57,334 bases of DNA, from assembly GCA_013115145.1 (NCBI GenBank), contig JAAPAO010000178.1:1-57334 (forward strand), written 5' to 3'. The stretch is from Perkinsus chesapeaki ATCC PRA-425. Taxonomy: Eukaryota; Protista; Perkinsozoa. The notes below the pieces were generated by a model. The model ran no database searches and had not been told where the DNA came from. It saw only the letters and a list, made by a program, of their open reading frames with translations. A program made the position numbers and the translations under genes. Position 1 is the first letter of the stretch. Every line of letters begins with the position of its first letter. Positions 1-17,478 of the stretch are shown piece by piece.

Positions 1-761
1 AATACTATCAAAGCGATCATTCGGCGGAGGATCATTAATGGTCTGGGGCGCCATAGCAGGAGATGAGAAAGTGCTCCTGGCCGAGGTTAACGGGAACTTG
101 GACAGCGAAGGGTACCAGGGGCTGTTGGAAAGAGACCTTTTACCTTTTTTGGAGGAAGGAAGGGAGCGTGGGGTCGAATATACCTTTCAACAAGACAACG
201 CCAGGCCGCATGTGTCTACTTCCACCAAGGCTTGGTTAGACCGAAACGGTGTTGAGTGCTGTGTTTGGCCCGAAGTGAGCCCAGATCTCAACTGCATCGA
301 GCACTGCTGGGGAAGGCTAGCCTGTATTGTATACGGGGATGGGAAGGGTCCGTACAATGACAAGGTTGAGCTCAGAAAAGCGATTTTCGAAGCCTGGGAT
401 TCTCTGACAAGTGAATACATCAGCAAGTTGACCAATTCTACTAAAAGCCGCCTAGTAGAAGCCCTTAAGTGTGGTGGGGGGCCCACTAGATACTGTTAGT
501 TACTTTCGTAGTTTCTTTTTGTGAGCGCATGTCATGCCTAGTTATTATCAGCCAAGACATTGTTGTGTGATATTATTTTGTGGACGTGCTGAGGGTAGCC
601 GTTTCAGATATCTTCCGAGGGCGTGCGCGAAATCATATAATTTTACCATGATAATTTTTGTCATGACTAAAAACCTAGGAATTCAAAATTTCGTGTTACG
701 AGTCGTTCTTGTTGTCGAGAAATATTGAAAAATGCATGTGTGATATAATTTTGTGGAGGGG
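1..761 (+). mobile_element. Tc1/mariner (DD34E) DNA transposon, right portion; left end outside window
   Basis: Transposase C-terminal half, then a ~260-bp tail with two copies of TGTGTGATAWWATTTTGTGGA (564-584, 737-757), as in IR/DR-type Tc1 ends. The exact right end (~761) is uncertain. Confidence 0.8.
2..499 (+). CDS. Tc1-family transposase, C-terminal DDE catalytic region (5'-partial)
   Basis: Frame is open from nt 2: SFGGGSLMVWG, FQQDNARPH, WPEVSPDLNCIEHCW. There are 34 residues between the second D and the E (DD34E). Confidence 0.92.
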   Translation: MLSKRSFGGGSLMVWGAIAGDEKVLLAEVNGNLDSEGYQGLLERDLLPFLEEGRERGVEYTFQQDNARPHVSTSTKAWLDRNGVECCVWPEVSPDLNCIEHCWGRLACIVYGDGKGPYNDKVELRKAIFEAWDSLTSEYISKLTNSTKSRLVEALKCGGGPTRYC

Positions 762-1012
762 TTTATATATTACTCCTATGCCACCTCCTTATTACATTTA
801 TATATTACTCCTATGCTACTTCCTCATTACATTTATATATTATTCCTATGCCACCTCCTCATTACATTTATATATTACTCCTATGCCACTTCCTCATTAC
901 ATTTATATATTATTCCTATGCCACCTCCTCATTACATTTATATATTATTCCTATGCCACCTCCTCATTACATTTATATATTATTCCTATGCCACCTCCTC
1001 ATTACATTTATA
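762..1012. repeat. 35-bp minisatellite, ~7.2 copies (consensus CCACCTCCTCATTACATTTATATATTATTCCTATG)
   Basis: Full units start at 781, 816, 851, 886, 921 and 956, with partial units at 762-780 and 991-1012. Confidence 0.97.
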
Positions 1013-1108
1013 AATTGCATCTCATGTACTCTCGAAATGTATGAGGTCCGTCGAAATCTCAGCCGTCTTTAGATGGCTGGTAATGTATATATCCTAAACT
1101 CCGTTCAG

Positions 1109-3185
1109 TTACGAGATCCTTGCCGAGGATACGCGAGTTAAGGATTTCTTCGGCAAAGGGGTTTTGGAGAGGATAAAACAGCCACAGACAACAGTCTTGG
1201 TTGAACTGTTGGGTGGTCCAAAGGTGTATCAAGGTCAGTTCCAAACTACAGGTCGTGGGAGTCGAACCTGTGCGGTTAGGTCGAGATCTTCCGGCAATAC
1301 ATAAAACACTGGGCGTCACCGATTACCACTTCGATGCTTTTATAATGGACTTCGACAAGGCCCTCAGTGGGGCAGGACTGGATTCGGATCTTATCGACGA
1401 GGTTGTTATAACCTTGGAGCCTTTACGAGACGTCATCCTAGGGCGAGATCCAGGTGGGGAGGGAGGGGGTTGAGTAGCGCGCTCTGAAGGGAATCGCTCT
1501 CGTTATGAAAGGGGAAATAATCGAGCGCATGGGCGCGCTTCTTGTCTTCGCGAAATTCGGGTGTTCGCTGGACACTTACTAGTCGAACGCTCGGTCGAAA
1601 CGATCTTATTATCCCCTCTGCAACAAAACTGTCGATAAGGCACTTGTGCCAAGCTATGAATTAGGAAGGGTTGCCTGATGAAATGGTATCAGTAAGCTCT
1701 TCTGCACACTGAACTGTGGGGGTCTGATACATTGTTATTCATCGCTTCAACTTTTTCACAACGTGGAAACTTTTTAGGTCTTGGAATGCTTAACATTGAT
1801 GTAAGAAAGTTCTGAATGTAATCTAAGAAGTTGAAGTGAAAATTAATCCTTGAAAAACTTATGTACTTTTTTCCCAATCGCGGTAGGAATGGTTCAGTGC
1901 CGTTCGGTGAGTCTTTGCTTTTTTAGGTGAATCTGCCCTGGCTCAACAAATGAAGCAGAAAAACGGCAAGCCTGTGGTGGAGCGGCTGGGTGGGGATATG
2001 AACCTTGAGACTATAGTGGAAGGAATGTAAGATGCTACTTCACCGACACTTCCCTTGTTCGTTATTCGGTTATTGGTACTATTGCTGTACCTTTGAACGC
2101 ATTATAAGTGTATCCTATGTTGATACGTAAAGGTTTAGGCAAATTCATTTTCCCTTCGTATTTCGTTGTTGTTTACGTTGATAAGATCCGAGGCGCACTG
2201 TGTACGTACCGTTGTGATGGGTTCGTGGTATAGGTACGAAAAGGCACAGGTGGACGACCGACTCAAGTTCTTCTTGGACAAGGGGAAGCAGAAGATCAGA
2301 CAAATCAAACAAAAAATGTCGTCGTGCAGAATTGCTTCCTTCTTTGAATTAGTGTTCCCTCTTAGGTACCAATTGATTTGCGGAGCGCTCGGTGGCCCGA
2401 AGCTGTATGATATTGCGAAGCTGAAGCCGGCGCATTACAATATGAACATCACCAACTATCATTTCGATGCTGTAAGCCAGAATGCAATCCGGCATGCATC
2501 TTTCGGTTAGATATTGAACTGTTTTTCTGAGATGTGTCGCGAGATGGGCATCGATGCTGATACGACTGATGATGCTTGTCTGGTGAGAAATGACTGATAC
2601 TAGCCGCCATTAGTATCTGGGAGCCTCAGATATTAAACAGCGTCCGAGGCGATATCACAACAGGGTGCTCAGTCCGTATGGAACTGGCGAAGAGGCGTAG
2701 TCAACTTGACGGTGAGATGCGTACTTGAGCCTAGGTTGAGTTCTGCTTTCCAGGCGATGACCAACTCTTCGCGCGCCTCGGTGGCCTTGAGGGAGTCGAA
2801 GATGTTGTTAGTCGTCTCTACGAATGTGTTGAGAGGGATAAACGAATCAACAACTTCTTCACGGGAGCGAAGCTGCAAGCTATCAAACGCAGTCAGAGCG
2901 ATTTCATAATAAAAACGCTTGGCGGGCCCACAAACTACAGCGGTCGAACTCTGGAGGAGATCCATGCTGTTTTGGCCATCACCGATTTCCACCTGGACGT
3001 CTTCTTCCAGCTGATGGCTCGGTCGCTGAGAGATTGCGGTCATGATGGCGATACAGTCGATGAGGTGTGGACGAGCCCGCCTCGTGGAAGATATTTGTTT
3101 TGGTCAGGTGCTCGTGAGGCTGGAAGATCTGCGGAAGCATATACTGGCTGCCCATTACGAGAAGAAGGGTTATGTTGTTAGGTGA
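1109..3185 (+). CDS. Multi-domain truncated haemoglobin paralog, 5'-incomplete (last three globin domains; possibly a pseudogene)
   Basis: Spliced exons give YEILAEDTRVKDFF..GGPKVYQ|GRDLPAIH..; VVERLGGDMNLE..M|YEKAQVDDRLKFF..PAHYNMNITNYHFDA..; LFARLGGLEGVE..EEIHAVL..HYEKKGYVVR*. These are collinear with domains 6-8 of the gene at 3296-9131 and share several introns. Confidence 0.85.
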
Positions 3186-3295
3186 TGCATGACACCATGT
3201 TTGGCTTTAGCCTTTTAACGTGTTACTTCATAAGCCTTTGCTGATGTGATGTTGGTCAATTAGGGCGATTTCTATTACAGAACGGCCAAGTCAGA

Positions 3296-6200
3296 ATGGC
3301 TGACATCGTCGGCCTAATCACGAATGTTGAACGCGCGCACAATGATCTGCAGCAACTACGAACTAAGATGGCCAGCGTTACTGGTGAGACGATCAACATG
3401 GCCATGGCACACATAATGTATCAGGCAAACTCGAAGCGATAAAACAACAGGTTGGCCCGACTGCGGGAGGCGGGGCTGACGGCACGACCCCAATTAATGC
3501 TCATTACGTGCAGAGCGAGCTGAGCCGAGCACGAGAGACACTTGACAGGTGAGACAAAAACTGCTTGTAACATACCTTCCGTGAAGTAACCTGCGCCTAC
3601 GGGCTTGGAAATTCTAGTTTAAATAGTTCGAGAAGGATTATCGATAAAAATCTAAATTTCTCGCCAACCCCATACCGAATATAATTATGGCTGGTATACC
3701 GTTAGAAAGTCACCCTCGAGAGCTTTCGAACTTCGCACGCATCGTCGAAATGCTCGGCCTCCTGAGAAAGTTATTCAAAGAAGCCCATTTTTGGGGGGAC
3801 ACCCTGTAGGAGACCGAGCGCGGCCGAATCATGTGCACTGAGAAGACCGACTACTTAGGTTCATGACAATGGTTCGGGAACAAGCTGAGAAGCAGGATGC
3901 CACTAGCGCTGATGATGAGCTGATCGAGGCCGAGGCCACCATGGAGACACTTAGGAAGAAGATGACGGGCACCGATGACAAGACCAGACCGCTGTAGAGG
4001 ACGCAACCGTCGAGCGTACCTCAGGCATCCGTTCTCCCTCAGAATCGAAAGGCTAGGCGGTGACACGGCAATCGAAACATGCGTGAAGCTCGCCTATGCC
4101 CAGGCTATGAAGGATCCTCGAACAAAGTAAGGTCATCGATATTGACCGGAACCGACGTTATTTTAGGGCGTACTTCTACAAAAATAAGAGAAAAATGACA
4201 TCCATTAAGAAGAAGATGCACCAGTATCTTGCTGGAGCCTTCGGTATCGCCTTGCTTGTGGAAATGTAAAGGCAGCCAATCTGATCAGGCGGTGCTTCAA
4301 CTTACGATGAGGAGGATCTTAAGAATGCCCATTATCAACTCAACATAACCGATTTTCACTTTGATGCGGTAGGCCTTCCTAATGGGGGACGTTCGTTCGC
4401 TATGGCGACTGGATCCGGAGGGGACCAGATTATAGAGCTAGCAGTGGTGTTATAGACTGGTATGAATGATTGATACGATATCGCACAGCACAGCCTTGGG
4501 GCCCGAATGGGAACGTAATTATTCGGGAGAAAGTAATGCAGAATTGCTGTATTATTCTGCATTAGCCTGGCCTGCGAAATAACTACAATAAGTGTATTAA
4601 CACCTAATTAGCATTGTCAATAATACTGGCTCAGCATATCCTTTGCCTCGCTCCGCCACAGACCGTGAGGAGCTCATCGATGTTTGTGAATCAGAAGGTC
4701 AATGTCAGGTGGCGGAGATGTTCCATGAAACTTTTGTGGCTACTGGAGCTCATGCCAACGCAGTGAGAGTAAGAGGAGCTGCGCTAGCTTGGAGATGAGT
4801 TTTGAATTGAGCAGGATGCGATGAAAGTGCTGGCGGCTACAAGGAAGGATATTACAACAGGCTGTACAGTGAGGATGGAGCTGGCACGGAGGAGTACAGA
4901 GAAAGGACTTGATGCCCTATTTCGACGGTAAGACATTCTCCTGTGAAAGAGGCTTCGCTGTGTTGGAATACGTCCACTTACCGACCTCTGTGTCGGGCAT
5001 GCATGAGAACTCTCATTTTTTCATGGAGTATCTTCGAAGCCTAGTGAGGCGATTAGGAGAGAAAAACGATGCCTTCGGTAAACTTCCGACTGAGCAATGC
5101 AACTCCCGTGCTGACTTTACGTATGCTAGCAGAAGCATCATTGCCGATATTCAGGCTTGGAGAAGAAGCGGGCATTGTGGAGTTCGTCGACCGTCTTTAC
5201 GACTTGCTTGTCGGGGATAAGAGAGTCCTGCCGTATTTTGAAGGGAAGGACGTATGGGCGTAAGCTGGGAAGAGCTCGACAGTCTTCCGAGGAGATCAGT
5301 CGAATCCAGTTCGGTCTCCGGAATCTCAATTTTCAGGATCAAACAGAAGCAGCTCGTCTACATAACATTCTTACTTGGCGGCCCTAAAGCTTACCAAGGT
5401 GAGATACGCGTTTTGGAACGAAGCAGTATACGCTCCTACTCAGGGAGAGATCTTGCTGAGATACACGAAGGTCTCGGCATTGACGACTACGGTTTCGACT
5501 GCTTTACTATGAACTGTGAGAAGGCTTTAGCCGCGATGGGCGTGGACGAGGACACAATTGACGAGGTGGTCACGCTAGGTGCAGGAAAAACGGCCAGCTC
5601 GTCGCTCGTTATTAGATCATCGTTACAATCGAGCCTCTACGAGACGAGGTGCTCAACAGGAAGCGAGGACTTCGGGCTGAGACTAAAATAGTAGACGGTC
5701 AGTCCATTTTGCAAAGGATCGGTGGCGAGATGAACTTGGAGGCGGTAGTGGAGACCATGTATGTTCTGACTCTCAGCAGGGGGATCGAGCAGCTCCCGTG
5801 TGGTTAGGTTCTCTGGCTGTGTTGTCGACCCAAGAGTGAAATACTTCTTCACGAAAGAACCCGGCAAGCTGGGCGGAATTCAGGCGAAGCTGGTAAGAGA
5901 GTCATCCCAGCCGCTTGAATGAAGGCTCCGTATGCAGGTCCAGCTCTTGACTGGTCTAATGGGAGGCCCCAAGACTTACGACTACGCCCGGTTGAGACCG
6001 GCACATTATAATCTTAACATCACAGATTACCAGTTCGATGCCGTTGTGGAGAATCTGCAGGTGAACCGTAAACAGGAGGAAGACGGTCCGACACTGTGTT
6101 GATGGCAGGTTGCGTGCAGTATGATGGAAGTCTCGGACGTTGTTATTGCTGATATCACCGAGGTTATCTCGACACTGCGATCCTACATTACCTGCGGCTG

Positions 6201-9131
6201 CGTGGTCCGGTATGAGATAGCAAGGAAGAAGACTGAGGCTGCTGGTAAGTCACGTGTGGCTGTCACGCGCTGAGCGGAAATATGGTACCGCAATCTGAAT
6301 TCAAGAAATGGTCGATGGGGAATGCTTAGTAACGCACTCCGAGCTGATCATTTTTAGGTACCGAAGGACTGTTCAACCAGCTTGGCCAGGACGAGGGAAT
6401 TACAAAGTTTATGGACTTCTTGTATGACCTAGTTACACAGGATGATAGGATAAAGCACTTCTTCCAAGGCGCCAAGCTTGATGCAGTGAAAGAGAGTCAG
6501 AGTAAGTTAATGCAGCAGTTGTGGTTGAATGCCCAGCTGCCCCTCTTTCGCATACTTGTTTTTACAGGTGTATATTTCAAAGAACTATTCGGCTCATCAA
6601 CTCACTATACTGGACGAGACATTCCCTCCATACATTCACTTATCCAAATATCTGACTTCCACTTCGATTCCTTCTTGGACTCTGCCAAGATAGCATTGGC
6701 GAAGCTGGGCATGGACACCGATACCATCGATGACTGTAAGAGCTCGCTCAGCGGTCTTGTTCACATGCAAGTGTTCAAGAAGCAGTATTTATCGCCTGCC
6801 TACCTTATCAGTCGGGAAAAATAGGAAATATTTCTTCTAACCTGAATCACGTTGCTTAACCGTAGCATTGGGCTGACGCAACACGGCTCTAGACTGTATT
6901 GCTCAGGCATCGTCCTGATGGAGTCCGCTCGTAAAAAAGTCGTCAACCCAGAGCTTATGAATCACGATGTCAAAAAGGCCATGGAGCTGGCCAATAAGAA
7001 GCCTTTGTAGGGTTGGAAGAGGGGCCGTTGTGCGGCGGCCTTTATTGGCTGGCTCTCAGATACGACAGGCTCGGAGGAGAATATACCATCACAAAGTTGA
7101 TGGAATCTACTTACGACAAGGCATTGGAGGATGATAGGTTACGCTTCTATTTTGAGAAGAACAAGGCCAAGGTGACCAGTATAAAGAAAAAGATGACACA
7201 GTTCGTGTCGGGCCTGACGGGAGGTCCTTCTGGTTATGATATCCACGATCTCAAGTACGTTGGACAACGTTGACTGGCGGCTCAGCTAGATTAATATTTC
7301 AGACCTGCCCACTATTCGATGAATATCTCCAACTTTCATTTCGATACCATGCTCGGTTTGCTTGCCCAGACGATTATTGAAGACTTGAAAGTCGAAAAGC
7401 CCGTTGCTCGAGAGCTGATGTCGTTGCTCCAGCCAGTCAGGGCCGACATCACCACCGGATACACTGTGAGGTCCGAGATGGCCAGGAAGAACATCGAGAA
7501 GGGTAAGCCCGGTGACTTGGGACAGTTGAACCGGGTCAACACTTAGGTTTGGACCATCTCTTTGAAAGAATGGGAGCAAGGGACGGCATATTGAAGCTTC
7601 TTGACAGCTTGTAAGAGATAGCCGTTCATGGTAGGAAATTACTGTGTTGCAGGTACCAGCTGGTTGCCGGCGACCCTCGGATAAAGGACTTCTTCGGCGA
7701 TGGCGCGTTGGAGAAGATCCGAGAGGGGCAGACGATTGTCCTGGTAGAGCTATTTGGTGGTCCTAAAGTCTACAATGGTAAACAGACGCAAATATGATCG
7801 ATATCTCAAAGAGGTTGGTGCTTTCAGGCCGGGACCTGGCCGAGATCCACAAGAACTTGAACGTCACCGACTATCACTTTGACTGTTTTTGCGCCGATTT
7901 CCAGAAGGCAATGATGGGTCTTGGAATGGATGAGAATCTAATCGATGAAGTCCTCATTACCATGGAGCCTCTACGACTCACTATTCTCGGTCGGGACGGC
8001 AGTAAGTCGAAAACGGTTGCCGGTCGAGTAGCGGTTATTTGCAGACGAGGCAGCGCTGGCTGCTCAAATGAAGGTAAAGGACGGAAAGAGCGTCATGGAG
8101 AGACTCGGCGGTGACATGAATTTGGAGGCCCTCGTGGAGTCTATGTAGGCCATGAAATGGTTGGCGTCTCTCCGATTTTGCGAGAATCTGCTGTGGGGTC
8201 AGGTTCGATAAGGCTATGACGGACGATCGGATCAAATTCTTCCTGGACAAAGGAAAAGCGAAAGTCCGAAATCTGAAACAGAAAATGTATCAGTTCATGT
8301 CGGGTGCTTTCGGAGGACCAAAGCAATACGATCCAGCAGCGATAAAGCCCGCGCACTATAACATGAACATCACCGACTTCCATGTTGATGCTGTAAGTCG
8401 AGCGCATTGAAATGGGTTGCCAGCGTTTTCGGCAGATGCTCGACTGTTTTTCGGATACATGTCAAGAGATGGATATCGACCCTGATACAATAGACGATGC
8501 CATCATGGTAAGCTGCGTTACGGACAGTCTCGCTAGTGGTGCCGATTCGGCACTGCCGAATTAGGTCATGAACAGTGTCAGAAGCGACATCACTACCGGT
8601 TTCGCGCTACGGCGTGAGTTGGCTCAGAAGCGGGACGGCCAAGACGGTGAGTGTGGGTCTTGATAGACGTGGAGTTATTTTCTTCCGATCAGGTGAAGAC
8701 CAACTCTTCGCGAGGCTTGGCGGGTTGGAAGGTGTTGAAGAATTTGTAACGCGACTCTACGAATGCGTGGAGCGAGATCGACGCATCAACCAGTTTTTCA
8801 CTGGGGCGAAATTGAAGGCTATCAAACAGGCCCAGACAGATTATATAATCAAGGCTTTGGGGGGACCGTCCGACTATACCGGACGATCGCTCGAGGAAAT
8901 ACATGCCGTGTTGGCAATTACTGACTACCACTTGGATTGTTTCCTCCAACTGGTCTCGAGGGCGTTGCGAGACTGCGGCCAAGATCAGGAGACCGTTGAT
9001 GAGGTGAGTGCTTCGATTAAGCTGGCAATTGTGTCATACTGGAGTTACCTCAGGTTGTAGTAAAGCTCGGATCTCTGCGAGGAAGCATACTGAAGGCGTA
9101 TTATGCCAAGATGGGGTATACGGCTAAATAG
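3296..9131 (+). CDS. Eight-domain group I truncated (2/2) haemoglobin with an N-terminal coiled-coil extension, multi-exon
   Basis: ATG at 3296 (MADIVGLITNVERAH..). GT-AG splicing joins in phase through 8 domains, each with a (R/Q)(L/I/M)G(G/E/Q/A) start, F at CD1, an EF GG(P)/GS motif and proximal His F8 (AH or IH), most followed by a (H/Q/G)FD-type G-helix motif. TAG at 9129-9131. Confidence 0.9.
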
Positions 9132-10526
9132 GAGCTCATAACATTTACCAATACCTATGTTCATTCCTTAATCATGCTGTCTTCTGTTGTGAATTGTCCT
9201 TTGCCGAGTTTCGAGTTACCAGTCGAGTTCTAAGACGCATTTCACTCCATATACAACTGAGCTGAGCTGTGCTCATCCTACTAATCTAGTCTATAAGGCT
9301 TTAATATTTGCAACCATAAAGCGAACATCACACTGCGACGGCCATGTAACGCGCGAGTGTCATGTTCGCAGGTGGAGAAAGCATGTGGAGCAAGAGTGTC
9401 GTGTGCTCGTCACGTGCTCGAACGCTGCAGGGGCGTGAATGTATTCTTCACTACATTTAGAGGTAGCAAAAAGTTCAGCTGGTAACAGAAGGCGAAGAAA
9501 TCAAGTAGCGTTTTCCACAGTATATCGGTAGCTATTGGGGCCCAGGTCGACGCAACGAGTGCCACTCACCGGGTGTAGTGCTCGCTGCTGCTGCTTCCAT
9601 TGAATTCCTCGCATCCCGCTGGGGCGAGCGATATCCGTGGAGAGTCGAGAATGAGTCTGTCCTAGCCCAAGCCCCAGGGGTCCTCATCACCAGGGATCCT
9701 ATTCAAAGATACCCGCCACAACATGCGCCAAGATGCGCTTCACCTCACGCGCACATAACAATATGAACGCCAGGAGCGTGTATTTCGGCGCAATGAGGCG
9801 TGTATGTTCGTACCTTTGAGATGTTACACGACAAAATACAGATACGTTCGGCAATGCCGATTGGTTTCCGAAAATCAATAGTAGCATTGAGGAGGAAGAC
9901 CGCGATTTGAACTGTCCGTTATACGTACCGAGGATGAATCGCATTGATGTAATCCCTCGGGACCGTCACTGCGATCAACTGCTGCCCGGATGGGCTTACG
10001 GGGTGCATGAATGTTCAAACAATGAAGGTTTACTCTAACAGGGAGCTCAAGTTTATCTGTGCCAGAGGCAAGAAAGAGAAAGCAAGCAAGTTTGGGTGCA
10101 GTTCGTTAACGCGATCTCCTATCAATGGAACGTCACTAAAGCCACGCACGGTGAGAGACATGGCGGCGGCCCTCCAGTGATTACTTTCCCCTATCTCTTG
10201 ATTTATACCACTAATCCTCTGAAGAGCTGAGCCAATACGGATAAAACTATGCTGCACAGGACCGTTTAGTCGAGCTCGAAGAGGTACTGGAAACCGTGCA
10301 CAAGGCAGATCCAACATGTAGCGCCACGACGCGGACTGCGCGTCTGCGTGCAGATGTACGCAGACATCAACTAGCTGTGCCGTATTCCCCCTACTAACAG
10401 GTTCAAAGCCTAGGGGTTTCGTCGTCGAGCGATAAGGCTATCGAGTCTCTCCGGGTGAGGTCTTCGAGTCCTCGATGTTCGACGTTCGCACAACAAACCT
10501 TCCTATAGACTTTTCGCCTACTTGCG

Positions 10527-10784
10527 ATGTCATTCAACATCTTCTACACTCTGCTGGCTACTCTACTCGTTCAGACTGCTTGTGAACTTATTCATTGTGA
10601 TCCCAGGTTTGGAGGAGTTCCTTGGGAATGCTGGAAGAGAAAACTGACTATATGCTACTGGAACATTTGTACAAAGAAGTGTAAATCGGATCAGGAATGC
10701 AAATCCGATAAGTGGCTGGGCCCTGCAGCTCCTTTCTGCCATCCTGTTGGAGCCCCACTCGGAAGTGTTTGTCTGTACCAGTGA
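10527..10784 (+). CDS. Small secreted cysteine-rich peptide (hypothetical)
   Basis: ATG start, hydrophobic signal-like N-terminus MSFNIFYTLLATLLVQTA and 9 Cys in 85 aa including C-x3-C-K-S-D-x2-C. A 45-nt intron at ~10781-10825 could extend it to ~10897. Confidence 0.6.
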   Translation: MSFNIFYTLLATLLVQTACELIHCDPRFGGVPWECWKRKLTICYWNICTKKCKSDQECKSDKWLGPAAPFCHPVGAPLGSVCLYQ

Positions 10785-10886
10785 TGCTTTGGAATTGAAG
10801 CCCTCACAGTAGCTTCTCTCTATAGTTCGGCAACTGATACCTCGCCGCTCGACGGCGACAGGAGTGCACTCTGGTATCAATGCAAA

Positions 10887-10937
10887 GCTATGTATTGAAC
10901 CAGTGCGCAGTGACTGCGCACTGGTTCAATACATAGC
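10887..10937. repeat. Perfect inverted repeat, 24-bp stem with 3-nt loop
   Basis: GCTATGTATTGAACCAGTGCGCAG-tga-CTGCGCACTGGTTCAATACATAGC. Confidence 0.97.
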
Positions 10938-12239
10938 GAGTGACTGTCACTCGCACTCGCCTCGCGCACACTTCCTGCTTTTATCTTTCATCTACGACTT
11001 TCAGAACCATTCATAGTCTTGCGCCACAGTATTCACAGTGGGGGGGGGGTCGATCATACGACATATATTGTGGACTTTCTAGCGGGCACGACACCCTCAG
11101 CCTTGCAGCAACGGCGCTGACATGAGCGCTACCAAGGTAGCGGATCAGAAATAACCTACCCAAGCGCAACGGTAGATTATGCTGGCCAAGCATACCAAGC
11201 CCTCAGAACCGATATACTCAGTAATGAAGCTGCTTCCCGTATTCGTTGAAATAATTTCCCTATTTCACCCCTACCACCAAATTGACGTCCCTATTCGTGA
11301 ATGAAGTGCCGTTATCCACGGAATAGATTTATCAAAAGTATAGAATGTCCCTCTGTTTTCAGATTTGCCTTCTCGAAATCTCCGCCTTATGGAATGAGGC
11401 TCACGTTCACCTTTTACTGGAACGCCCCGATATTCATTGCCCTCTAACAGATTCCTCACAATGATTATAAAGCTTCTTCGCAGGTCCCCTGCAGATCGTT
11501 CATGACCAACACTTCCTGTCCAGTAAGACTACGATATGTCTCAGCTACACTTTCTGTCTCCATGATGCAACCACTATTCTTCTGCATTGTAGGCATAATT
11601 GTATATCGTTCACGCTGTTACTTGCATCTAAGAACCCCTCTGTGTATTCCTTCGTATCTTGCTGGAACTATATTGTTCACTCGATACCCCGTTTTCCTTC
11701 AAGCAGTGTATCCGCCAACAGGCGCGATGCGCCGCACTATACCTGCCCTTCGCTTAGCTTAGGCGCCGCGCTTGCGTCAGGAGGAACACTCTGTAATCAT
11801 CCATAGCTCAAGTGTGCAACCACTATGCTTGATACCTGTATTTGTAAGCTAAGCAACTTTCCGAATCCCCCCATTCCCTCAATGTGGGGAAATATTCATT
11901 CTAGTTGCAGTGAACATCTGCATCCTAGGACTCGGACCATGCTGGTGATCGGTTTGAGTTCTTCCCCAACGATCGTGATGAGGATCGAGCGCTTCCGTGG
12001 TCCTAGCCTAGGACTCCTGGGTAGCGTAACCGATGATATTGTATTTTTTCGGCTCAGGACGTCGCCTCATCCAGATATGTCGTTCAAGAGGTTCAAAATC
12101 CTATTCGTCACTCTGCTGATCCAGGCCCAGACTGTGTTCCATTGTGACATCAGACACCTGAATGCGTCTGATAACGCCACATAAGTGGGCAGCAGCTATG
12201 CCGGTTTTGAGCCCAGCAAAGGAGCGGTTTAACCGTCTA

Positions 12240-12895
12240 CACCTTTATAATACCTAGTTCGTCCTTGGGAACATCAATTTCGCAGCGGCGGGCGAAGTTG
12301 AAGGTCCGAATCCGAAACCGTAAGATCTTTTCCGCGCTTGGGAAGTTCAATTTCGTCTTAGAACTTTCAATTCCGTCTCCACCCAGGAGGTGACTTCAAT
12401 TTCGCCCACTTAGGGAAGTCAATTTCGTGTTTCATACAATCAACTTCATCGTAGACTACGTGGTTAGAGAGTTTACTTTAAAAGTTTACTCGGTAGAGCA
12501 ATTGGCCATGACTCATGGCCCATGAGGACATGCCTGTCGGTGCTTAAGCTCATGCAATTCACATGCCTTTTTGAAGTTGAATGTCACATGCATCACGTGG
12601 CATACTTAACTTTTCAACACAGCCAATGTTGAGTTGTTGAAAGTTTAACTCTTTTAGAGTAAACTCTCTAACCACGTAGTCTACGATGAAATTAATTGTC
12701 TGAAACACGAAATTGATTTCCCTAAGTGGGCGAAATTGAAGTTACCTCCTGGGTGGAGACGGAATTGAAAGTTCTGAGACGAAATTGAACTTCCCAAGCG
12801 CGAAAAAGATCTTACGGTTTCGGATTCGGACCTTCAACTTCGCCCGCCGCTGCGAAATTGATGTTCCCAAGGACGAACTAGATATTGAAAAGGTG
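12240..12895. mobile_element. Non-autonomous Tc1/mariner-type MITE/foldback element, 245-bp TIRs, TA target-site duplication
   Basis: 12240-12484 is a near-perfect reverse complement of 12651-12895. Termini are CACCTTT..AAAGGTG, flanked by TA at 12238-39 and 12896-97. The 166-bp core is non-coding. Confidence 0.92.
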
Positions 12896-13413
12896 TACAT
12901 GCTTAGTCCCGAAGTATTGCCGAGACCTGTTTGCGCATGTCGCATTGCTATCAATTTCGACTATCTTTATAATGAGCAGGCTGGAGTTGGCGTTGGCAGT
13001 GGCGTCCACCATAATCGATACATTTGGCAGAGTAAATGACATGTGTAACTACTTCGTGCAGTACACAATGGAACGTAGTACGTATCACGCGTTTCACGCG
13101 TAAATGACGAAGTTTCCGTGTTTTACGTGTAGTGAGCAGTGGAATGTGTATTTCACAGGTGTTGTACATTACGCGGGTGCATCTCCAATATATATAGTAT
13201 ATATTGAATATGGCGGAAGCGTGTCGTGTTATTCGTCGCGAATGATTGGTGTTTTGTGTTCTTGGTGAAAAATGTTGAACGTTGTCTCGAATGGTCTCCT
13301 GGTATTATAAGTCCAGGGGCATTATACCACTGGTATGTATCTCTATAGAAAAATAGTTCTCAATACAAACACCCTAACAGTAACTGGTTGTCTGGCTGGT
13401 TATATCATATAAC

Positions 13414-13859
13414 TTATATGGACGGGTTCGGTAGCAGCGTATACCTGTCTAGTCTACGCATGTCCCGCATCCTTTTAAAATATTCTCTTGAGTTCGTTGT
13501 CCCATTACCAAGTATGCCGGCACCCTTGAAATTGACTCTGCTCAGCACTGTAGAAGACGCGCCATCCAACAGGGAGACTGCATTCGAAGAGGCTGTGGTA
13601 CGTCTTCGTCTCCCCTTTCCGTGAAAAATCAATACAAGTGGGATAATCAAGCAGTATATCATTGTGCTGATCACTGGGGGCGTGAAAGGGAATTTAAGTT
13701 ATTGTGGGAGGGAACCACCGTGAAAGTCTACCACCATGGTGAGGTGGTAGGGTCAGCACAGTTTTTAGGCACACATGGCAGTGTACTTGTACACTGTACA
13801 AGTCGATCTTGATAGGCAGCAACACCCGAACTCAGAGTCCCGAGAGCCACCCAATTCAT
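13414..13859 (-). CDS. Putative 3-exon small secreted Cys-containing protein (hypothetical)
   Basis: ATG at 13859 gives MNWVALGTLSSGVAA-YQDRLVQCTSTLPCVPKNCADPTTSP. A phase-matched GT-AG intron leads to C-DQHNDILLDYPTC..ECSLPVGW..GC. The last exon is uncertain. Confidence 0.35.
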
Positions 13860-14557
13860 GAAAAACCATCGGCGTTGCCTTAGACCGACCGGTCACCGCT
13901 CAGCGATATGCCGGCGGAGTATACAATGAGTCTGTGATAAAGACTAATAATCAGAGGGAAAATCAATCTTGATTTCGATTCGGCGTCTCACACGCCCCGT
14001 GTGAGATTCCGGAAATCGGACTCAGATTGTGATTCTTGAGTGTTTTATTATGTTATGGATTCCACGGTGGAATTTCCACCTTATGACTGGTTTTTATCTA
14101 AAGCATATGCTAGATACAACTTCGAATGACCATGTTCGAATGCTTCGATATGATAGGCCAATCGCAAGCAATGAATAGCAGCTTTCACGAAGCGCCCTTC
14201 CGCGATTGGACGATTGGCGCCCTTGTTTGGACAGCTATGTAGAACGATTGTGATCGTTCAAAACACGATCCTGCTCCATCGGGCCACCACAAAAAGGTGA
14301 ACAGTATCGAAGTAATAGGTTATAAAGCGATGGTCAAAGCGTGTGTGGCCCGCATGCTGCGAACATTAAGTTTATGATTTATTTTGTCGCTAGTATCGAT
14401 TGAGCAATTGGGGTAGGCTGTTAATCCCGCCTATCTCGGGTCCCTGTGTACTTATGGGCATAGGGAGATGGGAGGACGAAGGTGACTTCTATTATATTCC
14501 GATGACTGTTCGACACGACAATATCTTTGTAATGGGAACCATGATGAAAAATTCATA

Positions 14558-15928
14558 CTAGAAATTAACAGCCTCTCTGATCGAGTCGGCAACACGATGT
14601 TTATTAGGGACATAGAACTCTTCCCATGCCAACGGAAAGGGGGTATCAAAGCCTGTCACGCGCTTAACTGGTGCCAGCAGCGATAGGAAGCAGTCTGCTT
14701 GAACCTTCGCTGCAATTTCAGCGCCTGACAAAAGGAGTGGACCCTCAAAGCCTCTGCTATCCTCCTTACCGAACCCATTTGTCATTGGTGCTTCGTGAGC
14801 TATGATACATCTCCCGGTCTTTTTGACCGAATTAACAACTGCATCCCGGTCCCATGGCAGAATGGTTTGCAAATCTATCACCTGCGGCCAGCGTAGACAT
14901 TAAAGCGATAAGAATCATCCTTACCTCTGTCGATATTCCCTCTTTGGTTACCATCTCCGCGGCCTCCATGCAGCGGTTCACTTGGTTGCCCCAGGCGATC
15001 ACCGTAACGTCGCTCCCTGGCAAGCCATCGCGACAGCGCTGATGAAGGGGCAAATCCTCACCTTCCCTGACGGTTTCGGCTTCTCCCAGTGGGATTTCGA
15101 AGTCACCAACAGGCACCTCATCGCTGCTCGCCCTATACAGGACTTTGGGCTCGAAGAATATACAAGGATTCCTGTCCCTAATACAAGCCAATAGCAGACC
15201 TTTGGCTTGTAGGGCAGATCGCGGTACTGCAATCTGAATGCATATGTTATGGATAGCACCTTAGGGGGCTCCTACCTTCAGGCCGGGGCAATGAGCAAAG
15301 AATGCTTCGACGCTTTGACTGTGGTACAGTGCACCATGGCCCACAGCACCGCAAGGAGCGCGGAAGGTGACACCGCCAACATTGTAGGCCCCAGAAGCGC
15401 GGTAGCGATATCTGCGCTTGCTTGACCGGCAGGCGGGTAGCAGGTAGCTCACTTGGCTCCTTCGTTGACAATTTGATCGAAGGCTGGATAAATGTAGTCG
15501 GCGAATTGGATTTCGGCGATGACATCATGGCCTCCAGTGGCCGCCATGCCAAATGCGAAACCAGCAATTCCCTAAGAGAACGGATTCGAATGAAGCTGAC
15601 TGGCGGGCTCACTTGCTCCGTTAGGGGAGAGTTGAATACCCGGTTTGGTCCGAAGCGATCTCGCATATTAACTGAGCATCGAAAAACTCCACCGAATGCA
15701 ACATCCTCGCCTGAGAGACACTCGGGTTTACGGCAAGCCTGCAGCAAGGCTACCGAACATGACGGTCTTCGGATTTGTCTCCAACGCCACAGTCATAGCC
15801 GAGTTGATGGCCATGAACATGTTCATGTTCTCAGTGGGCCCCGAGTGTGCCCTAGACCCACCACGGTGGGGGAATCTTATAGCGCGACCATTCCCACCGA
15901 GACATTTGCGGCTCAGGCTTAGGGCCAT
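14558..15928 (-). CDS. BCKDHB: Branched-chain alpha-keto acid dehydrogenase E1 beta subunit, multi-exon
   Basis: Motifs [68 protein letters not shown], plus an Arg-rich transit-peptide-like N-terminus. Confidence 0.95.
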
Positions 15929-16033
15929 GAATAACAAACAAAACTAGATCCGCCAGGTAGATGTAACAAGCACAACAAGTCTACTTTACAATGAAGAAAC
16001 TCACTAACAAGCACGAGTGCCCCGCCGGGCGTA

Positions 16034-17346
16034 TCACTGATTTGTCCACTTCGCCTGACGCTTCTCGCTAAAAGCTGTCATTCCTTCCTTTCTGTCCTCC
16101 AACGCCCATGTGGAATGGAAAGCAGACCTCTCGAACCTGAGCAGCAAGAATGAACTTGCCGAGGTGGTGAGTCCAAAGTATACGAGGCACACAAACGCTG
16201 TCAAGTCAGAGTTTCGCGTTGGCCAATGGGCCGTGTGAGAAGGGTCACGTCGGAGGCGTTATGGCAAAAAACGAGTCGGTTAATCCGACTCCAGCCAAAG
16301 GCCTCTGAGTTGTTGCTGTAAGGTTCCCCGAAAGTACATTCGGAAGCACAGCTATGTGTGGGGCGAATCACAATGACGAATGGTTGCTCTCGGGAGCGAG
16401 CTGATCGATATGAGGTGAGGCTCACCTCAGTCCTTCAGCCAGAGTTGTCTCATAGGCGCGATTGACAACCTCCTTCGCCATTGCAATGGCAGGAGCCGAC
16501 AACGACGCTATTTGCTCAGCCATCTCAACAGCCTTAGGGACGAGCTCATCTGCAGGATACACCTGTTCAGGCAGATGGGGTAGTCTGCGAAGGGCGGTCC
16601 GCCTACATGAGAGACTAGTCCCCGTTTAAGAGCTTCATCCGCGTGCATGCGCCTTCCGGTGAGGCAAAGCTCCATGGCTAGGCTCTTGCCAACTACTCTA
16701 GTCAATCTCTGGCTGCCACCAGCACCGGGAATGGTGCCCAAAAGTACCTATGGGACGACTACTCATCGAGAGCTAGCCTAAACAGGTCACCTCTGGCTGA
16801 CCGAAGACAGCTTTTTCACTGGCCAGTGCGATATCACACATCATAGCGAGCTCGCACCCGCCGCCCAAAGCATAGCCGTTAACAGCCGCGATGACAGGCT
16901 TCTTAATTTGAGCCAAGTCTTGCCAGAACCCTAGCATGTTCTCCTTACAGACCTCTGCCATGGTCTCTCTGCTGTTCATTTCCTTAATATCAGCTCCGGC
17001 AGCGAACGCCTTCTCGCCGGTGCCAGTGATGACTATGGCGCGCACACTGTCGTCCTTGTCAAGAGCACTGGTCACGGAACTGAGCTCGGTCATGAGCTCG
17101 TCGCACAAGGCATTGAGGGCCTTGGGACGGTTAAGCCTGAGCCGAAGGAGACGATCGCACCGGCAAAGCAGAGCAGCAGCAGCCACGTTACGTTATTAAC
17201 GCTGTCCCTTTGTCGGCGTTGACGTCTACTAGAATGTTCTTGTAGCCGGAGTAAGAAGAGAACCCTCTGTGGAGTGCGGCGATGGCACTCACTCGCGGAA
17301 CGAAGTTCTGGGCAGCGCGGCGAGCAATTGAGTGAAATGACAACAT
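16034..17346 (-). CDS. ECHS1: Mitochondrial short-chain enoyl-CoA hydratase (crotonase), multi-exon
   Basis: [59 protein letters not shown]; last exon [21 protein letters not shown]. Confidence 0.93.
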
Positions 17347-17478
17347 TAAGAGGGAGAAAAGTCTACTAAATAATGAAGTAATTAATAACGCAAGACCGAA
17401 GCAAGAAGGATGAACTCAACACAGCGGTACAGTAAAACGAGGAGGTTGATCATGGTACATGTGGGACGCGGGAGAGTG

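Follow-up and report, generated by a model that had tools for sequence, protein, structure and literature searches.

A Perkinsus gene that very probably encodes a single chain of eight truncated haemoglobin domains of two alternating subtypes

The window analysed here, a stretch of 57,334 nucleotides from Perkinsus chesapeaki ATCC PRA-425 (contig JAAPAO010000178.1), carries on its forward strand, at positions 3296..9131, what is very probably one protein-coding gene of a Perkinsus-lineage alveolate, whose product would be a soluble chain of 1,179 amino acids (aa) made of a helical N-terminal region of about 110 residues and eight linked truncated haemoglobin (TrHb) domains of group 1 (TrHbN, or T1), hereafter D1 to D8. 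As judged from its sequence, the window holds the 3' part of the first member (alpha) and the whole of the second member (beta, the gene in question) of a tandem pair that is older than the split from Perkinsus olseni. A sequence-only reading of this DNA had proposed a single gene coding for eight group-I 2/2 globin domains in one chain of about 1,150-1,200 aa; the length found is 1,179 aa, and both the single gene and the eight domains in one chain are borne out by a gapless fit to P. olseni, by shared introns, by purifying selection and by homologues in which the whole architecture lies in a single open reading frame (ORF). The span then proposed, 3296-9131, holds as one gene, although further globin exons upstream (1109..3185), belonging to a separate paralogue, had been missed.

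The gene model is solid. It was obtained with our own protein-to-genome aligner, which allows GT-AG introns in all three phases, using the well-defined domains as templates and checking the junctions by eye, and consists of 29 exons and 28 introns, all bounded by GT..AG, of which 22 measure 40-58 nt and the remainder 66-340 nt; position +3 of the donor is A or G in every one of them. The reading frame runs unbroken for 1,179 codons from the ATG at 3296 to the TAG at 9129-9131, with a stop in frame 5' of the ATG (3243-3245), while the ORF listing of the forward strand shows only fragments over 3296-9131, many with truncated-haemoglobin motifs. In-frame stops between domains, for which the sequence-only reading had advised looking, are absent, the internal domains having neither start codons nor stops at their boundaries. 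In fact, exons without any stop cross these boundaries and keep the frame continuous: D1 ends and D2 starts within the exon 4815-4927, and the exon 5616-5758 runs from the H helix of D2 through the linker into the first helices of D3. No signal peptide or other hydrophobic signal sequence is evident by inspection in the 1,179-aa product. Two junctions were revised in the course of building the model. An exon at 4635-4703, placed on the G helix of D1 by a first-pass alignment with D5 as template, was discarded in favour of 4709-4768 because of the helix pattern and the length of the domain, a choice with which the gapless P. olseni fit agrees, and the acceptor of intron 1 was moved from 3436/3437 to 3424/3425 upon comparison with P. 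olseni (...TGKLEAIKQQ...).

In two independent samples, the DNA contigs covering the gene agree with the window sequence, the single supported substitution being intronic. One low-depth contig (run X4) displays a 1-nt deletion at window position 3465, in a G-rich run of exon 2, which is absent from two other runs of that sample and from run X3, and is most likely an assembly error and not a frameshift allele. At 3648-3846, inside the intron 3549-3858, all four DNA runs show an increase in contig depth of about 6-10-fold together with the ends of many short contigs, which points to a dispersed repeat within the second intron of the beta gene and would explain why this intron is unusually long (310 nt).

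Domain borders were set by running a profile made from the window's own exons on the 1,179-aa product, and they match the genomic ranges that had been proposed for D1 to D8. The parts of the gene, with the two domain subtypes (types A and B) discussed below, are as follows.

3296..3993, forward strand: N-terminal non-globin region, aa 1-112; exons 3296-3383, 3425-3548 and 3859-3993.
4043..4927, forward strand: D1, type A, aa 113-242; exons 4043-4126, 4167-4243, 4289-4368, 4709-4768 and 4815-4927 (the last shared with D2); Tyr B10, Phe CD1, Lys E10, Met E11, His F8; EF motif GGA.
4815..5758, forward strand: D2, type B, aa 248-367; exons 4815-4927 (part), 5155-5259, 5337-5398, 5444-5565 and 5616-5758 (part); Tyr B10, Phe CD1, Gln E11, His F8.
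5616..6244, forward strand: D3, type A, aa 378-507; exons 5616-5758 (part), 5808-5892, 5938-6060 and 6109-6244; Phe B10, Phe CD1, Lys E10, Leu E11, His F8.
6358..7006, forward strand: D4, type B, aa 514-636, with the linker to D5; exons 6358-6501, 6568-6735 and 6907-7006; Tyr B10, Phe CD1, Gln E11, His F8; EF Gly-Gly degenerate (GSS).
7060..7502, forward strand: D5, type A, aa 647-778; exons 7060-7254 and 7303-7502; Tyr B10, Phe CD1, Lys E10, Met E11, His F8 in the motif KPAHY.
7547..8001, forward strand: D6, type B, aa 783-902; exons 7547-7610, 7653-7777 and 7828-8001; Tyr B10, Phe CD1, Gln E11, His F8.
8045..8646, forward strand: D7, type A, aa 916-1044; exons 8045-8144, 8203-8392, 8436-8507 and 8565-8646; Phe B10, Phe CD1, Lys E10, Met E11, His F8.
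8693..9131, forward strand: D8, type B, aa 1052-1171, with the C-terminal tail; exons 8693-9003 and 9054-9131; Tyr B10, Phe CD1, Gln E11, His F8.

The comparison with P. olseni carries most of the weight. A profile search over 1.84 billion representative proteins, made with an alignment from which a misaligned linker exon had been left out, placed "hypothetical proteins" of P. olseni and P. chesapeaki at the top, and the nearest relatives are those of P. olseni, KAF4651942.1 of P. chesapeaki and XP_002767307.1 of P. marinus, in which the family members are likewise annotated as "hypothetical protein"; the search for alveolate orthologues suggested earlier thus yielded proteins of three Perkinsus species, in keeping with the guess of an alveolate parasite. 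When the model was aligned with residues 1197-2375 of KAF4665176.1 from P. olseni, 1,178 residues matched without a single gap at 86.8% identity, and all 28 introns of the window gene recur at the P. olseni locus at the same codon and in the same phase. The P. olseni gene has one extra intron, in D7: the exon 8203-8392 of the window gene is uninterrupted, and a phase-2 intron splits its counterpart both in the window alpha copy (2234-2471) and in P. olseni beta (14296-14530 of the P. olseni locus, L003), so that the difference is a lineage-specific loss in the window's beta gene. Over the whole coding sequence the proportion of nonsynonymous differences (pN) is 0.083 and that of synonymous differences (pS) 0.79, the latter being saturated; part by part, pN lies between 0.05 and 0.13 over the N-terminal region (0.054) and each of the eight domains. 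The gene is under purifying selection, with pN/pS about 0.1 in every domain, and no domain is decaying.

More distant homologues show the same architecture in uninterrupted form. On one metagenome contig (L002), the N-terminal region and D1 to D8 of the protein P0003, collinear with the window product and 44% identical to it, form one ORF of 3.36 kb whose sole interruption is a 36-nt GT-AG intron inside D8, and whose end coincides with that of the window gene. Another metagenome contig (L001, positions 10001-17392), from a compact, intron-poor eukaryote in which the neighbouring genes code for MCM, mitochondrial carriers and a WD40 (IFT122-like) protein, carries two tandem intron-less eight-domain genes of 1,265 and 1,166 aa, each with its own ATG and stop. 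In the first of these genes and in the relatives P0007 and P0009, D5 to D7 score very weakly, some of them without His F8, and may be degenerate, haem-free domains. Conservation of the N-terminal region, for which a Pfam search returned no family, starts at residue 1, as seen in P. olseni, P. chesapeaki, P0003 and the genes of L001.

A tree of 82 domains, whose sources include the window, both P. olseni copies, P. chesapeaki, P0003, P0004, L001 and P0008, recovers five of the eight positions as groups that cut across taxa: D3, D4 and D5 form one group each, and D1 and D7 are each grouped apart from the long-branched rows of P0008, with D2, D6 and D8 less cleanly resolved. Position labels change 14 times on this tree, against about 61 when they are shuffled. 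The odd domains form a single clade with 99% support, within the tree D3 and D7 fall together (93% support) and D2 and D6 lie together at the base, a pairing that would fit duplication of a four-domain block; D1 and D5, and D4 and D8, are not resolved as sisters. Since domains group by position and the homologues have the same architecture, the eight-domain unit predates the divergence of these organisms, and it is, on this sequence comparison, an old unit present in several Perkinsus species and in intron-poor metagenome eukaryotes, usually as a tandem gene pair.

The assignment to the truncated haemoglobins follows from profile, residue and fold comparisons. With the cut-off of the Pfam family PF01152 (Bac_globin) at 21 bits, exon pieces of the window match singly (D8 60.8, D7 27.1, D5 26.9 and D3 23.1 bits, and 56.2 bits for D8' of the alpha copy), and in the P. 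olseni orthologue the family matches exactly 8 stretches with 372 bits, which is the number of matches that had been expected of this profile. His F8 and Phe CD1, earlier said to be kept throughout, are indeed found in all eight window domains, and His F8 is kept at all eight positions in nearly all homologues. Tyr is present at B10 in six domains and Phe in D3 and D7, positions at which the homologues mix the two; the AB Gly-Gly pair is kept in D1, D3, D5, D7 and D8 and reads GE, GQ and GA in D2, D4 and D6, respectively, and the EF motif is GGP or GGA in every domain except D4.

Within this common frame two subtypes alternate strictly along the chain, type A in the odd domains and type B in the even ones. 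Even domains have Gln at E11, Ile or Val at E7 and the standard length between CD1 and the EF motif; odd domains have Met at E11 (Leu in D3), Ile or Leu at E7 and a span three residues longer. Lys occupies E10 in all odd domains and in D2, and a small residue (Ser, Gly or Ala) does so in D4, D6 and D8. The pair Tyr B10 and Gln E11 is consequently found together in D2, D4, D6 and D8 and in none of the odd domains, and the difference between the two pockets is also kept across homologues. Residues E7, E10 and E11 of the odd domains were assigned by anchoring on the EF Gly-Gly motif.

By sequence, the closest proteins of solved structure are HbN of Mycobacterium tuberculosis for the even domains and the TrHb of Tetrahymena for the odd ones, D8 aligning with HbN (1IDR) without gaps at an E value of 1e-12. 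All significant solved relatives by sequence are group-1 TrHbs, and group II structures appear only lower down in the fold search. An AlphaFold2 model was computed with 20 aligned homologues for the P. olseni orthologue (86.8% identical), not for the window's own product, and reached a mean predicted local distance difference test score (pLDDT) of 83 and a predicted template modelling (TM) score of 0.68; its N-terminus forms two long helices (3-42 and 54-104) of low pLDDT. The best Foldseek matches of this model are HbN and the TrHb1 proteins of Paramecium, Tetrahymena and Chlamydomonas (1IDR, 1DLW, 3AQ5 and 1DLY among them), with TM scores of 0.85-0.93 and root-mean-square deviations (rmsd) of 1.0-1.6 A, in agreement with a 2-on-2 fold. 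A 3-on-3 fold is not supported, the sole 3/3 haemoglobin among the matches listed (1O1L) having a TM score of 0.36 by target. The matches in the AlphaFold database also held several shorter globin-like entries.

Perkinsus species rank among the major parasites of oysters and clams and live inside host haemocytes, which generate reactive species of both oxygen and nitrogen. A conserved, strongly constrained and predicted eight-haem protein encoded by a tandem gene pair in a parasite that lives in haemocytes is an obvious candidate for the handling of nitric oxide (NO) or O2. Through its His F8, each of the eight domains would be predicted to carry one haem b, giving eight haems per chain. The even domains, HbN-like in their Tyr B10 and Gln E11, would be the catalytic sites of an O2-dependent NO dioxygenation, and the multi-haem protein would thereby shield the parasite from host nitrosative stress. 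We tentatively favour such a multi-haem NO dioxygenase or NO scavenger with catalytic even domains, with somewhat less than even confidence; the defence against NO and reactive oxygen species, or the O2 storage, put forward by the sequence-only reading is likewise plausible for the HbN-like even domains. The N-terminal helices would probably serve in self-association or in docking a partner.

The strongest competitor for this role, still unlikely on balance, is O2 storage, buffering or delivery under hypoxia, in which a high local concentration of haem would serve a parasite of intertidal bivalves and NO detoxification would not be the main task. Concatenation of globin domains is the classical route to the high-capacity O2 carriers of invertebrates (the Artemia and Ascaris polyglobins), haem-binding residues are kept under purifying selection in all eight domains, and four of the eight have an apolar distal pocket, devoid of the Tyr/Gln pair on which NO dioxygenation relies. 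Nevertheless, O2 is typically bound too firmly to be delivered by TrHbN pockets that combine Tyr B10 with Gln E11, and such pockets are those of the best-documented NO dioxygenases, as established for M. tuberculosis HbN. Other haem chemistry, or sensing, takes the share of probability that NO dioxygenation and O2 buffering leave over.

A more elaborate and improbable form of the NO dioxygenase reading would make use of the alternation itself, the strict A-B order giving four hetero-pairs in which the odd domain would act as electron relay or gas reservoir for its even neighbour, so that the chain would be a multi-haem NO-dioxygenase "wire" whose N-terminal helices would dock a reductase or assemble a larger particle. 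In such pairs the odd domain would possibly be hexacoordinate like THB1 of Chlamydomonas, in which Lys E10 ligates the haem iron; Lys E10 in the odd domains permits this as a possibility, by analogy, yet HbN is pentacoordinate although it too carries Lys at E10. We know of no globin that acts as a built-in relay or reservoir "wire" of this kind.

Several points weigh against the reading of one eight-domain gene and its product as set out above. Public run searches returned no RNA run holding the stretch, and two small RNA runs with the same species label gave zero coverage of it; the case for a single polypeptide is therefore built on comparison, and what is said of the mRNA, of where it starts and of its independence from the upstream paralogue is inference. 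In some GenBank models alpha and beta are joined as one protein of 1,987-2,375 aa. A HMMER alignment of an odd domain to the Tetrahymena TrHb puts the gaps elsewhere than the EF-anchored numbering of the E helix, which a conserved aromatic residue at E14 supports without proving. Finally, the domain packing in the AlphaFold2 model of the orthologue differs from that of a paralogue model in the AlphaFold database (TM score 0.51, rmsd 26 A), and the quaternary picture is therefore unreliable.

The fused GenBank models bear on the 5' boundary of the gene, where the window holds the following features.

1109..3185, forward strand: 3' part of the alpha paralogue, comprising the second half of D6', D7' and D8' in 9 exons, with its own TGA at 3183-3185.
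2-496, forward strand: C-terminal part of a transposase ORF, DDE_3 (Tc1/mariner-type; PF13358, 33.8 bits), running off the start of the window.
762-1016: tandem array of a 35-bp unit, 7.3 copies with 95% matches, between the transposase ORF and the exon at 1109.
3270..3295, forward strand: pyrimidine-rich acceptor-like site ...TTACAG, the TTACAG ending at 3281, 14 nt before the ATG.

The alpha copy has an intact frame and, in a spliced alignment, is near-identical to P. olseni alpha over the latter's final two and a half domains; its domains cluster with D6 to D8 of that copy in the domain tree, and its last exon (3108-3185) is homologous to the beta exon 9054-9131. The exon expected before 1109 is absent from window positions 1-1108, where an alignment of P. 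olseni alpha gave only spurious matches in the transposase ORF; the 35-bp array and the transposase ORF occupy its place, and either a large insertion lies within an intron of the alpha copy or its 5' end is truncated.

A larger gene, in which alpha and beta would be spliced into one transcript coding for about 16 globin domains, is what the P. olseni models KAF4665176.1 (2,375 aa) and KAF4723286.1 (1,987 aa) depict, joining ...EKKGYS to WSLVE-MADIV... across an intron that takes out the alpha stop. The window has much of what such a junction would need: only 110 nt separate the alpha stop from the beta ATG, the frame is open for 17 codons 5' of the ATG at 3296, and the TTACAG acceptor stands at the same distance from the ATG as in P. 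olseni, where an acceptor-like AG about 15 nt upstream of the beta start (L003 about 9870-9894) is the one used by the fused GenBank model. A donor is harder to find, the only phase-compatible ones before the window alpha stop being GTTGTT and GTTAGG, while all beta donors have A or G at +3. Moreover, other P. olseni assemblies show separate adjacent genes, KAF4713054.1, which ends in ...EKKGYSVK and a stop, followed by KAF4713055.1; in the intron-less L001 the two tandem genes are kept apart by a stop, 93 nt and an ATG; and both P0003 and KAF4651942.1 of P. chesapeaki begin at the same Met-Ala/Ser-Asp/Glu-Ile N-terminus. The TTACAG site is accounted for equally well as a candidate spliced-leader acceptor, a reading suggested by the trans-splicing that is established in Perkinsus. 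Since the fusion requires a GTT donor, seen in none of the 28 introns, and intron-less relatives keep their genes separate, we consider a fused gene improbable and retain the beta gene as a unit of its own. A set of several short genes or a decaying pseudogene array, the long frame being then an artefact of splice-site choice, is extremely improbable: although no RNA run holds the stretch and the GT-AG sites were chosen under homology guidance, the gapless fit to the P. olseni model, the 28 conserved introns, the uniformly low pN/pS, the exons that cross domain borders free of starts and stops and the single-ORF homologues (L002, L001) argue for one conserved gene.

Downstream of the beta gene, partial agreement with P. 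olseni was observed in the flank, where P. olseni has an enoyl-CoA hydratase gene on the minus strand and the window, by eye, a similar frame on the minus strand; a Pfam search gave no match for two minus-strand ORFs downstream in the window.

Multi-unit 2/2 globins are otherwise known only from sequence surveys, and the gene described here would offer a well-defined model of the class, in which the concatenation of domains and their alternation could be tested for cooperative or relay behaviour. It also provides a clean 29-exon model of a locus for which the public Perkinsus models are inconsistent (fragmented, fused or "hypothetical").

Among the known systems close to it are the multi-unit T globins of repeated 2/2 units that, according to a review (Keppner et al. 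2020, PMC7475203), were identified in silico by Hade et al. 2017 (Hade, Kaur, Chakraborti & Dikshit, IUBMB Life 69:479), the T1 multi-unit sequences occurring, by the same account, in ciliated protozoan parasites. As this review describes them, they share with the Perkinsus protein the tandem 2/2 T1 units in one eukaryotic chain and a knowledge that comes from sequence only; the Perkinsus protein differs from them, on the account given there (PMC7475203), in having eight units of two alternating subtypes and a helical N-terminus, and in that the whole architecture is orthologous across several lineages. The profile search shows such globins to be widespread: it gave 134 cluster representatives below an E value of 1e-30, almost all of the best 150 having at least two units, and ten representatives outside the Perkinsus-type family have 7-12 matched stretches. 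One such long multi-unit T1 globin is EP01063_P030903 of the diplonemid Lacrimia lanifica, with 1,882 aa and 12 T1 units, and since it comes from a transcriptome assembly, mRNAs of this length do exist; volvocine algal proteins with 5-6 units are also of this kind. The units of the Lacrimia and volvocine proteins cluster with each other and not with the positions D1 to D8, and these proteins lack both the A/B alternation and the N-terminal region, which indicates independent expansions.

Closer relatives are found in GenBank, where KAF4665176.1, KAF4723286.1, KAF4713054.1, KAF4651942.1 and XP_002767307.1 are orthologues or paralogues of the window gene, the beta half of KAF4665176.1 having the same introns. 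These entries come from other species or strains, have no function annotated and are inconsistent in their boundaries, being fused in some cases and separate in others. The novelty suspected by the sequence-only reading is borne out only in part, given the orthologues already in GenBank as "hypothetical" proteins, the multi-unit T1 globins reported in silico and the ten representatives with 7-12 stretches. In the literature searched, no study of globins from Perkinsus came to light.

Of the single-domain globins, HbN of M. tuberculosis (1IDR), the prototype TrHbN NO dioxygenase, is nearest to the even domains, which align with it without gaps, and share its Tyr B10, Phe CD1, Gln E11 and His F8; the fold match has a TM score of 0.85 and an rmsd of 1.1 A. 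In contrast, HbN is one domain of 136 aa crystallised as a homodimer, its pre-A motif is absent from the Perkinsus protein, and the odd domains are unlike it in having Met or Leu at E11 and, in two of them, Phe at B10. The closest solved proteins to the odd domains are those of Tetrahymena pyriformis (3AQ5), Paramecium caudatum (1DLW) and Chlamydomonas (THB1, 4XDI), with which they share the 2/2 fold. The Lys E10 of THB1 recurs in all odd domains, where its ligation of the iron would be only a possibility by analogy, and the ciliate TrHb1 proteins are single-domain and have Gln at both E7 and E11, where the odd domains have Ile or Leu and Met or Leu, respectively.

The polymeric globins of invertebrates, with nine domains in Artemia and two in Ascaris and Daphnia, illustrate the same principle, namely the concatenation of haem domains by tandem duplication. 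However, they are extracellular O2 carriers of animals, have a 3/3 fold and are of unrelated origin, the Perkinsus protein being of the 2/2 type. On the sequence evidence it belongs to a known but uncharacterised class, the multi-unit T1 globins, of which it represents a large and deeply conserved form with alternating subtypes.

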